Assembly (NCBI GenBank): GCA_040357565.1
Contig: JBDODJ010000007.1
Source of the DNA: Cercozoa sp. M6MM
Lineage: Eukaryota > Protista > Endomyxa: Ascetosporea
Reading direction: 5' to 3' (one strand)
DNA: 64,000 bases
Part shown: positions 55,839 through 60,320 of the stretch, in pieces
Numbering within the stretch: position 1 is the first letter of the stretch
How the letters are laid out: each line of letters begins with the position of its first letter
The notes under the pieces: model-generated
What the model was told of the DNA's origin: nothing
Database searches by the model: none
The model's input: the letters and a program-made list of their open reading frames with translations, nothing else
Position numbers and translations under genes: made by a program

Positions 55839-56453
55839 GGCTTGTGTCCGCAGAAAACACGATTTTAAGTCTGTTGAAGTGCGTAGGGAGCGCAGGCGAT
55901 ACATCTCGGTCTGAGTTTTGCTGCCGCTATGCTGTTCATTATTGTAAAAACTATTGCTGGTTGAAAAACGATGCTTGTACATAACAAGCCTGTTCGTGGA
56001 TGTTTTAATGATCAGAAAAAGATACAAGCACGCATGCGTGCATGGGATGGTTACAACGAAGACGTGCTGTTTTCTTTGTCGCCCGTTTCAGCAAACCGTC
56101 AAAAGACAGAGCTTTTTCTGCAGGCATTTTGACAGTGTCTCGCCGTGAGAAGCACGGTCCTGTGCAGTGCGCTTGATACTGTACGCCACTTACGCTAAGT
56201 TGGCTGCACAGTAGCTACAACAGACGCGTGCTTCACCAGTGTCACTGACGGAGCGATCAGTGCTGACACGCGCTGGGACAACATCAATCAGTCAGAACAG
56301 GTGACCTTGGTCGGTCGTTGTCCTTTTCCTTGCCGCACTGTGCACACGCTCGAACGTGCACAAGCACTAGTGTGACACATAGCGTCTCGGCCTGATTCCA
56401 TCATCCTTGGCTCCTAAGCGCGAGTCACTGATTTTGGTGGCTGGTCGCCGAAA

Positions 56454-59400
56454 AGTAGGGACTGCTTTGTATGGATGTGCGCTTCAGCTACCATGGAATC
56501 GCATTTTTTTGGTCGCAGTGAGCTACACACCGATCAGCACGACGGTGGTGGCGAAATACCGCGCCAACTATGACTTCGATGCTGCCGGGCAGCCCGACTG
56601 CATTTCTGTTAGCGTGGGCGCCGAGGTCCTCGTCACCAATGTCGGTGTGTGCCCTGTCTTTGTGCTGATACTCAACCAGAATGATTGCTTGTTGATATAG
56701 GTGACGACGGTTGGCTAGAAGCCGTCGTTGAAGAGTACGGCCACCTCAAGTACGGCCTCGTCCCGGAAAGCTACTGCGAGCTTGTTCAGAGCAATGTCAA
56801 TCTGCCGGTACTCCTGTGTTGCCAGGGTATGTGTGGTTGTAACGCGACCCTTGCAGGTGGAAGAGCTGATGTACTCTGCCGCCGCTGAAATGTCGGCGCC
56901 CATGTCGATCGAACAGCCGAGTGGGCAGGTATGTCTGTGTCTGTGTGTGTGTGTGTGTGTGTCTGTGTGTGTATCTGTGTGTATCTGTGTCTGTTTGGTT
57001 TATGTCTGGTCCACTCAGGGCGCTCTGACCTCACAGTCGGGCCCTATCGTTCGCGAACGCTCTGGGCAGGCGCAGGAGCAGCTGAACGAGTCGTCGCGCC
57101 AGGCACTGCTGCGACGCTCGAAGAATGTCAACCGTTACGGTACCCGGTCTCTGAGCTGTCCTTGTCGTATAAAACCCCTCAATGTAGTGCCCAAGAACAG
57201 TGCCACGCGAGTCGGCATCTGGGCCTCTAACATGTCGCGTCTGACGGCGTGGTGCGGCATCATGCTGGGCGCCGTGGCTGCCGAGTTGTCGCTTGAGGAC
57301 GCTCAGGACAAGGGGGTCACCAATGCCGTAGCAAGCCCTCTAGCCTGACTCTTTTATGTCTCTTTTGGATACCTGTACCACGTTGCTGCAGAGTATTGGT
57401 CTCACTTCGACCGTGATCGGTATCCTAGTGCTGCTGTTCGAGAACACGCACGGACAGTACCGCTCGCCCACGCGCACACCCGTCCGTGCACTGGTATGTC
57501 CTAGCTGTGCCTGTACGCTTTCACTATACACACATGCATATGTGTATGTTGCCAGGTATACCTGCTGCTGGCGATCCCGCACGCGTTCACGACGCCGACG
57601 CTGCTGGTGGGCGCCTTCTACGTGCTGGCGTCGTTCGTGCACATGATGTCGGCCCTGATGGGCGAGACCTTTGAGCCTCCTCCACGACAACGTCGTCGGT
57701 AGGCGCCTCTGAGTGTAGTCTCGGCGTGTGTGTGTATCAATGAGGTACATGTGCAGGGCCAACGGAGCTGCCTCACGTGGCATGTGCTACTGTCTCACGG
57801 GTGACTACCGTCGCTCGCTCAAGGAGAGCGGTCGTCTGGGCGAAGTGATCTTCCTGATCTTCTTCTTCGTGGCACAGGGCCTCGCCATCACGTTCTACAT
57901 GATTCACTGGTTCCACCTCAACGCCGACCAGCCCGACCGCCGACAGCTGCACCCGCTGGCGCCGATTGCCAAGGTAAGAGATTTCCCCTGGGTTGCGACC
58001 TCTGTCTGTACCCTCTGTCTGTACGGTGTTTGGGGCGGCACAGGGCTTTGGTATCTCGCTCGACATCAACTGCGCCGTGATCCTGCTACCGGTGCTGCGC
58101 ACGATGCTCCGCGTGACGATTAACCGCTCCACGCGCGACCAGGGCTGCTGCAGCAAGTGCCTGCGCTGCATCATGTACTTCATCCCGCTGGACAAGGCGC
58201 TGCACTTCCACAAGCTGTGCGGCGTGCTCATCGCCATCGGCGCCGTCGGCCACACGCTCGTGCACTTCGTGGGTACCTCTGTCCTCATTTACCTGTCCAT
58301 CTGTACTATGTGCAAGTGTACCTGTCTATATGTGCATGTATGTGTGGTGTGTGTGTGACAGGCTACGGCTACTCGCCGGAGAACTCGCTGAACAAGTTCG
58401 GCGCCGAGTCGTACTTCACGGGCGCCGCCATCTGTGCCGTTATGCTCATGATGTATGGCGCCTCCTTTCACAACATCCGACGCGGCCAGTTCGAGGTAGG
58501 CGCAACCTATATTTTGATATTATATACATACATAATCTGTTATGTCTATGTTAGATTTTCTGGTACACGCACCACCTGTTCATCGCGTTCTACATTCTGC
58601 TCTTCATCCACGGCAAGAACTTCTGGTAAGGACACATGCACACGTTCACATTGAAAGGAAGGAAGCACGAGGTGTGTGAGTGCGCAGGAACCCTAACGTG
58701 TGGAAGGCGATTTCGGGCCCGCTGTTCCTGTACGTGTGCGAGCGCATTCTGCGCAAATGGAAGGGTTCGCAGCCTGCCGTCGTGCTGTCGGTCACGCACA
58801 TGTCGGTACAGCAGGCAACTGGGTGTGGGACGAAGCGGGTCTCATCTTGTACACATAGGGCAATGGTGTCTTCTGCGTCGAGTTCGCCAAGGAGGGCGTG
58901 TTTGCCACGCGCGATGGTCGCGAGCCCTACAAGGAGGGTCAGTACATGTTCATCAACTGGTACTTTCCCCTGTGAGTCTAGGGCCATGTGCATCCCATTG
59001 TATCCCACCCCTTGTTCAGTCCGTACGTGTCGGAGCACCAGTGGCACCCGTTCACGATCAGTTCGGCGCCCGGTGAGGACAGCGTGACACTGCACATTCG
59101 TGTCATGAAGGAGGGCAGGTACTTTCACCTCCGTATTCCTCCCATGCGCTGTTGTTATTCTCATGTATTTGTCCTTCTGTGTTTATCCTTCTGGACCGAC
59201 AGTTGGACGGCGCAGGTCGAGGACTTCTTCCGCCTGATGGGTCCCATCGACGCCACCACACTTGAATTGAAGCGACACACCAAAGACGGTACAGCAGCCT
59301 GTCTCTGCCTGTGTGTGTGTGTGTGTGTGCATACATATGTATTGCCGTGTGGGCATCACAGGACTGCTGCCGGGCCAGATCACGGGTCCCGACGGTCGTC

Positions 59401-60320
59401 CCATCCTCCGCGTGGACGGACCGCACAGTGCTCCGACGCAGCACGTGCGCTCGTACAAGTCGGCGGTACTCCCCCTTGCTGCTTCTCTCCTCACATTGTA
59501 TTGACGCCATTCCACCCCTGCAGATGATCGTGGGCGCCGGTATCGGTGTTACGCCGCTCTGCTCAACACTCAAGTCGATCGTGCACTACACCTGGCCCTA
59601 CAGTATCGGCGAGGGCTACCCGCAGAACGCCACCTTTGTCTGGGTACCCTTTAGTCGCTGGTGTACCCACTGACTTGCGTTACTCCCTCGTGTGTTTGGT
59701 ACTCAGGTGTGCGCGCACCGTGACGTCGACAACTTCCGCTGGATGTGCCGCATCATCAAGGAGTGCGCCAACACGATTGCGTCGCTGCGGCAAAACTCGC
59801 CTGAGACCATGCGCAACAAGAACTTTGAGTTCCACGTCTACATCACGTCGCCGCCGCCGGACGCGCGCGACCCTAACCCTGTGGTATCCCGGTCTGTGCG
59901 CTTACACTTGCCTTCATAGTGTACACCCCTCGCGGTAGATCGACGATGACGTGGGCTTCTGGGGCCAGAAGCGCAAGCTTAAGGACGAGGAGCAGTTCCG
60001 CGTGTCGTGCGGCTGGGACGAGCTGGCTCTGTACAAGGCACTCAAGAACCCGGCGCGCTACGAGAGCGTCGGCGATATCCAGGTGCACAGCGGTCGTCCC
60101 AACTGGGATGTGCACTTCCAGGAGATGGCCAACCGTCACCGCGGCGAGAAGACCGCCGTCGCTTTCTGCGGCAACCCGATGATCGCTGCGGTATACCCTG
60201 CTCGGTCTGTTTGTACAGTACTCCGTCTACGCTTGTCTGCAGGACCTGGCCACCAAGTGCCACCAGTACAGCGACCAGGCCTCGGGCACCTACCTCACGC
60301 TGCACAAGGAGAACTTCTAG
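56454..60320 (+). CDS. NOX: NADPH oxidase fusion protein: SH3 + p22phox-like + gp91phox/NOX catalytic core
   Basis: SH3 (YRANYDFD..DGWLE..GLVPESYCE); p22phox-like segment (IWASNM..LLFE..VRALVYLLLAIP..GETFEP); heme-His helices FHKLCGVLIAIGAVGH and HHLFIAFYILLFIH; TG motif; HPFTISSAP; DGPHSAP; GAGIGVTP; GRPNW; FCGNP; terminal HKENF*. Confidence 0.93.

Follow-up and report, generated by a model that had tools for sequence, protein, structure and literature searches.

p22phox is normally a separate gene product that forms heterodimers with NOX1-4, for which it is essential, and its proline-rich cytosolic tail docks the SH3 domains of p47phox and NOXO1. Non-animal p22phox homologues of NOX2-type oxidases are represented by NoxD/Pro41 with NoxA in fungi and by p22phox with NoxA/B in Dictyostelium; compared by description only, these are separate gene products without an SH3 domain, and they are likewise not known to have a p47phox-type docking system. 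In a survey of the FRD superfamily in which the origin of p22phox was described as unknown, SH3 was listed only inside the NADPH-binding domain in the Naegleria gruberi NADPH oxidase (NOX; model M17), where its presence was read as pointing to a partner rich in proline (Zhang et al., 2013, PMC3591440). Here we describe a gene that differs from the fungal and Dictyostelium systems on the first two counts, located in a window of 64,000 nucleotides (nt) on contig JBDODJ010000007.1 of Cercozoa sp. M6MM (assembly GCA_040357565.1). Its product is very probably one membrane chain of ~865-887 amino acids (aa), running from an SH3 domain in the cytosol over a flexible linker to a p22phox-homologous four-helix domain, and from there through a cytosolic linker of ~40 residues into a complete NOX2-type flavocytochrome.

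Cercozoa sp. M6MM is a marine amoeba of the Apofilosa, Rhizaria (PMC11069148), now named Lemnamoeba sinaloensis (PMC13746701); neither paper mentions an NADPH oxidase. The gene lies on the plus strand and comprises 20 exons between 56519 and 60320, which were chained from the read sequence with the frame unbroken. Every intron is GT-AG and 48-90 nt long, and the stop codon (60318-60320) follows a C-terminal KENF. Searching exon 7 (57556-57698) against 1.84 billion representative proteins returned a public protein, MES1907663.1 (887 aa; P0001), with 100% identity across the exon. This protein contains all 20 exon peptides in order, with gaps of 0-1 residue between them at split codons, and was used as the spliced full-length reference, the M6MM exons themselves being searched singly. 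It carries no NCBI description beyond "hypothetical protein MHM6MM_000739 [Cercozoa sp. M6MM]," and the annotation was made with funannotate with transcript reads as input (PMC11069148).

The three exons in which a first-pass annotation of the window had recognized p22phox (57188-57327, 57392-57493, and 57556-57698) translate as quoted there. The intron behind them leads, as had also been proposed, without a stop into the first NOX transmembrane helix (TM1) and a complete core, by way of a split Arg codon and in-frame exons that match the public protein. The gene start given at 57188 had to be moved, with four further exons upstream (56519-57139) encoding an SH3 domain and a linker; the N-terminal SH3 on the same polypeptide had been overlooked. 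The order along the chain is SH3, disordered linker, four-helix membrane domain, and full NOX2-like core (Table 1). The start codon of the public model is an ATG at 55971, which adds 22 residues ahead of the SH3 domain. Since the relatives begin right at the SH3 domain, the true start is probably the ATG split A/TG across intron 56455-56518 (residue M23 of P0001).

Table 1. Features of the M6MM gene, with positions in the window and residues of MES1907663.1 (AF2, AlphaFold 2; ICL1, intracellular loop 1).
Feature	Position	Strand	Details
SH3 domain, divergent	exons 56519-56644 and 56701-56807	+	residues ~24-100
Disordered linker	exons 56857-56928 and 57019-57139	+	residues 101-164
p22-like helix 1 (= p22phox M1)	exon 57188-57327	+	residues 166-211; conserved W-A-S-N-M motif; AF2 helix 174-199
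p22-like helix 2 (= M2) and short loop	exon 57392-57493	+	invariant E228, G232, R235; AF2 helix 207-231; short loop replaces p22phox ICL1
p22-like helices 3 and 4 (= M3/M4)	exon 57556-57698	+	R243, Y247, T260, E282; AF2 helices 242-254, 258-279; segment aligned to p22phox 128-136 bears PPPR
Junction intron between p22-like and NOX parts	57699-57756	+	58 nt, GTAGGC...TGCAG; splits Arg codon CG/G
Linker, pre-TM1 helix, and six-helix heme domain	57757-58805, five exons	+	Ferric_reduct E = 3.9e-12; heme His invariant in family
FAD/NADPH dehydrogenase domain	58859-60320, eight exons	+	FAD_binding_8 9.8e-14; NAD_binding_6 1.2e-14

Homologues in protein databases were collinear with the M6MM protein at 37-44% identity, and a metagenome scan yielded many more. 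In at least 15 environmental contigs (GC content 0.35-0.64), the whole span from the p22-like domain through the NOX C-terminus is one uninterrupted open reading frame (ORF) of 846-948 aa, and SH3 comes first in every single-ORF contig checked except one (L026), in which none was detected. The architecture, which the first-pass annotation had suggested seeking in other protists, is present in at least 15 other uncultured eukaryotes, and the central claim of that annotation, that both membrane subunits of the oxidase are one polypeptide, is supported by their single ORFs. Because the ORFs of the relatives are intronless, the p22-like domain could be cut out of them as uninterrupted DNA. The exception, L026:148-2967 (JACKZZ010007191.1), is a more distant fusion of 940 aa, with 27% identity to M6MM; its p22phox signature is the clearest, and it groups with L023, which has an SH3 domain. 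In three further loci (L019, L027, and L031), the p22-like and NOX parts lie on one strand in different frames or in separate ORFs, which could reflect introns or frameshifts.

The p22phox likeness of the four-helix domain is clearest at the level of the family. A profile built from 14 related p22-like domains, M6MM excluded (A5), matched human p22phox at E = 3.1e-8, with the next unrelated match at E = 0.09. The alignment covers all four helices in two collinear stretches, profile positions 8-91 with p22phox 6-77 (M1-M2) and 81-133 with 89-141 (M3-M4), in which the helix 1 part aligns with p22phox residues 6-30 and the part with helix 2 and the short loop with 36-77. Residues 166-295 of M6MM matched this profile in hhalign with a probability of 99.4% (E = 3.4e-21). 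Together with the structural matches below, these results uphold the helix-by-helix correspondence proposed earlier. With the full-length protein as query against PDB, human p22phox was the top match other than NOX (E = 2.6e-4). Exon 7 alone matched positions 93-133 of the p22phox family profile PF05038 (E = 0.0075) and residues 94-141 of human p22phox in PDB (E = 0.0075), exons 5 (57188-57327) and 6 (57392-57493) matched nothing in Pfam or PDB when searched singly, and a mixed profile (A2) matched p22phox at E = 0.045. Word-based searching with residues 165-300 recovered the M6MM protein alone. The sole other match to exon 7, P0002, was rejected as a relative: this repeat protein of 755 aa contains numerous EVEPPPR units, and its match is a low-complexity one to PPPR. 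Precomputed Pfam lists place PF05038 on no member of the family, an annotation gap through which the p22-like domain has been missed by standard annotation.

Structure prediction points the same way. In the AF2 model of the full M6MM protein, the four helices have predicted local distance difference test (pLDDT) values of ~74-94, and we infer from the model a four-helix bundle with both ends cytosolic. For comparison of the domain by itself we used an AlphaFold model of the L026 domain (mean pLDDT 83.6). In a Foldseek search of PDB, its only significant matches were the p22phox chains 7u8g_B, 8kei_A, and 8gz3_A (E = 8e-4 to 1.4e-3, template modeling (TM) scores 0.56/0.66, 28-29% identity), followed by a match at E = 0.66; the best, 7u8g_B (E = 7.9e-4, TM 0.56/0.66), superposed with a root-mean-square deviation (rmsd) of 4.2 over 135 columns. 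Foldseek and VIA-align with the full-length M6MM model recovered NOX and ferredoxin-NADP reductase (FNR) folds only.

Co-folding M6MM residues 300-560 and two hemes with residues 168-296 gave interface scores (ipSAE) of 0.65, 0.66, and 0.62 in three runs, with a best control of 0.00, a partner pLDDT of 74, and contacts shared between runs at 88% or more. In a calibration that included no ligand, 51 of 78 solved complexes attained the mark, as did 2 of 108 mismatched pairs. In the predicted contacts, the p22-like domain contributes residues 172-198 and 258-273, on helices 1 and 4, and NOX contributes residues 433-444, 463-477, and 479-491, on M3, M4, loop D, and M5. The same elements are named for the NOX2-p22 interface in the cryo-electron microscopy (cryo-EM) structure, and of the 12 interface residues listed there for each subunit, the contacts, mapped through alignments, include 10 in NOX2 and 9 in p22 (PMC9711523). 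In the comparison with the cryo-EM complex, which the first-pass annotation had proposed, helices 1 and 4 are thus predicted in silico to lie on NOX M3-M5.

The M6MM protein shares with human flavocytochrome b558 (NOX2-p22phox; PDB 8gz3, 7u8g, and 8wej) the six-helix di-heme domain, the FAD/NADPH domains, the p22 four-helix bundle, and the predicted seat of p22 helices 1 and 4 on NOX M3-M5, but it is one chain, in which the C-terminus of the p22 part is joined to the N-terminus of NOX. p22phox has a buried polar network, N11-E53-R90-H94-Y121 (PMC9711523), and E228 and R243, both invariant in the family, align with its E53 and R90. The other positions all remain polar with different residues: throughout the SH3 clade, M6MM included, that of H94 is taken by an invariant Tyr, and in L026 by Gln, that of Y121 is His in M6MM and Asn in the relatives, and that of N11 is a Ser adjoining a conserved Asn. 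Helices 2 and 3 are connected by a loop of only ~13 residues, against ~31 in p22phox (the A5 alignment skips p22phox ~78-88 and shortens 58-77), and the amphipathic helix of ICL1 is therefore absent. After helix 4, the ~40-residue linker runs into NOX TM1 without a proline-rich region, and M6MM carries an N-terminal SH3 domain in place of none in p22phox. The p22phox counterpart of a conserved G-E-x-Y-[ED]-A-P motif in this region is 128-136 and not the proline-rich region at 151-160. The PPPR of M6MM, which falls in the segment aligned to 128-136, is not conserved as a PxxP site, and an SH3 ligand at this stretch was rejected as a conserved feature.

The NOX part is complete and NOX2-like. 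Human NOX2 is its best solved relative (1.4e-50, as compared with 5.1e-38 for NOX5 and ~3e-25 for DUOX1), and residues 312-887 of the model align with NOX2 8wej_B in VIA-align at Z 27.4 and an rmsd of 3.7 over 480 residues. The closest named relatives of the protein are fungal NoxB. The motifs HPFT, GAGIGVTP, and FCGNP and the terminal KENF, read directly, are intact, and the Pfam scan of P0001 reported no EF-hand family. Of the heme ligands, H421 aligns with NOX2 H101 and H492 with H209 (inner pair), while H435 and H505 (outer pair) correspond, by the offsets of this alignment and the NOX2 numbering, to H115 and H222.

The two exon halves of the M6MM SH3 domain match, in single-exon Pfam searches, positions 1-26 of SH3_1 and 32-54 of SH3_2, and the whole protein reaches 18.3 bits against SH3_1 (residues 37-86; cut-off 22.9). 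Relatives score 50-65 bits for an SH3 domain at the same position, and the full-length AF2 model has beta strands within residues 31-100 (pLDDT ~77-91), so we regard the M6MM copy as a divergent SH3 domain. The linker that follows has pLDDT below 50 for residues 107-169, its exons have no genuine Pfam match, and in the relatives it is variable in length and often Pro-rich. An SH3 domain is likewise built into the NOX chain of the protist Naegleria gruberi, where its position is C-terminal and internal and a p22-like domain has not been reported; in M6MM, SH3 is N-terminal with p22 after it.

What the data show is the in-frame exon structure, the homology of each module, and their collinear single-ORF layout in many other organisms. 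Support for homology and for fusion is good, and the SH3-p22phox-NOX single-chain architecture is real and conserved, a variant of the known oxidase system. Several points nevertheless count against the full reading of this chain. On its own, the M6MM protein scores 17.1 bits against PF05038 (E = 0.0044), short of the gathering score of 25 bits, and most relatives taken alone have no match (P0003-P0010 searched individually); with P0006, p22phox was not found in PDB either. In the profile check suggested by the first-pass annotation, M6MM thus stayed below the cut-off, and the domain of a relative, L026, passed it at 32.4 bits (E = 8.7e-8). Because that domain passes the cut-off, A5 matches p22phox and M6MM matches A5, PF05038 membership holds at the sequence level through the family and not for the M6MM sequence by itself. 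Some relatives' p22-like domains (L009:808-1236, L007:389-805, and L014:778-1200), and also residues 168-296 of P0001, have weak matches to other small four-TM families, COPI_assoc (E = 6.6e-4) and Cg6151-P/TVP18/Flower, which represent either remote kinship or an effect of helix composition. The likeness to p22phox was also overstated at first, in that neither a proline-rich tail nor an amphipathic helix in ICL1 is present. The co-folding may echo the model's memory of the solved NOX2-p22 complex, and the docking is for that reason read as likeness, not as binding. Finally, for M6MM itself the single chain is deduced from DNA and gene models, and oxidase activity and the SH3 ligand are predictions.

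Three other explanations were weighed. Retention of the junction intron would bring in an immediate stop, the TAG at 57700-57702, and an in-frame ATG follows 85 nt downstream at ~57785, so a two-gene reading needed testing, with SH3 and the p22-like domain ending at TAG 57700 and NOX starting near ATG 57785. We consider this extremely unlikely: the intron is canonical, its donor GTAGGC recurs in another intron of the gene, as does its length in another, and its removal restores the frame. The ~85 nt leave no space for a promoter, the Met near 57785 is not conserved in relatives, and the public annotation, informed by RNA reads, has a single gene. For the family, two genes are excluded, because at least 15 relatives carry one uninterrupted ORF over the same junction. 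It is also very unlikely that the four helices form an unrelated membrane extension at the N-terminus, comparable to the extra helices of FRE-type reductases, whose resemblance to p22phox stems from membrane-helix composition alone. The marginal single-sequence scores would fit such an extension, as would the weak matches of relatives to COPI_assoc, Cg6151-P, and signal-peptidase subunits and an Atlas search with scores of only 0.80-0.81, in which Flower/TVP18 clusters ranked ahead of p22phox (a second Atlas search, with L026, found NOX clusters only). Composition alone, however, sits poorly with a profile match that runs through all four helices in order and stands well clear of the next hit, with a family member above the Pfam cut-off, with Foldseek E-values for p22phox alone ~500-800 times better than the next, with the coincidence of the invariant Glu and Arg with E53 and R90, or with the agreement between the predicted and the cryo-EM interface.

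A further alternative accepts the fusion and questions the function: the enzyme might be constitutive like NOX4, or a metal reductase, rather than a regulated superoxide producer, with SH3 serving for localization only. The reaction product is not readable from sequence, the protein has no p47phox-like proline-rich docking tail, and regulators were not identified in the genome, where only PB1-domain loci were seen. Against this stand the closeness to NOX2 over NOX5 and DUOX1 among solved structures, fungal NoxB as the closest named relatives, and the fact that every cofactor motif is intact; on balance we judge this alternative unlikely. In the single-chain oxidase that we prefer, the p22-like bundle would pack intramolecularly, helices 1 and 4 lying on NOX M3-M5, and would serve the stabilizing role that free p22phox has for NOX1-4. 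Electrons would be expected to pass from NADPH through FAD and on, by way of the inner heme (H421/H492) and then the outer heme (H435/H505), to oxygen. Docking, the task of the proline-rich tail in p22phox, may fall here to the SH3 domain, with either a proline-rich partner or a Pro-rich part of the adjoining linker as its putative ligand.

A tree of the NOX core only placed all 18 fusions on one side of a branch with full support (SH-aLRT, an approximate likelihood-ratio test, 100) and 15 NOX-only relatives, including fungal NoxB, on the other. As NOX-only sampling was thin, some branches were long and the root is unknown, a single origin of the fusion is compatible with this tree but not shown by it. 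A six-frame, exon-wise search of the M6MM genome found no second PF05038 match and no paralogue, although a small, intron-rich free-standing p22phox could escape such a search.

Searches across ~8.4 million papers turned up neither a natural p22phox-NOX fusion nor an SH3-p22phox-NOX architecture, and thus no publication to bear out the first-pass concern that this might be an already described NOX subfamily. Rhizaria and many uncultured eukaryotes can now be counted among the organisms with a p22phox homologue, in each case as a fusion with NOX. With a natural single-chain b558, the subunit ratio is fixed at 1:1 and co-expression becomes unnecessary. Such a chain could ease structural work and heterologous expression and offers a direct route to the contribution of p22phox beyond p47phox docking, and the presence of SH3 within it suggests a regulatory logic unlike the vertebrate one. 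Tentatively, and with some doubt on our part, the family may constitute an unrecognized protist NOX subfamily in which organizer (SH3), stabilizer (p22phox), and catalytic subunit form one self-contained chain. If so, p22phox would be more ancient and more widely distributed than its record in animals, fungi, and amoebozoans indicates, and the fused SH3 domain may mark an early version of the SH3-proline docking step, later divided in vertebrates between p47phox and the p22phox tail.

Elsewhere in the M6MM genome, PB1 domains were seen at three loci (G000:C101:27245-27955, C292:10438-10590, and C303:6303-6458; L086-L089), which are candidates for a NoxR/p67phox-like activator. Within the gene, the shortest intron is 57140-57187 (48 nt), which is spliced out in the public model; there is no stop in its frame (a 206-aa ORF spans 56728-57348), so its retention would lengthen the linker by 16 residues. 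A run of seven T lies at ~56504-56510 inside intron 56455-56518, and introns 56929-57018 and 59289-59361 contain (TG)n/(GT)n microsatellites, in keeping with the report that this genome is unusually loaded with simple-sequence repeats (PMC13746701).

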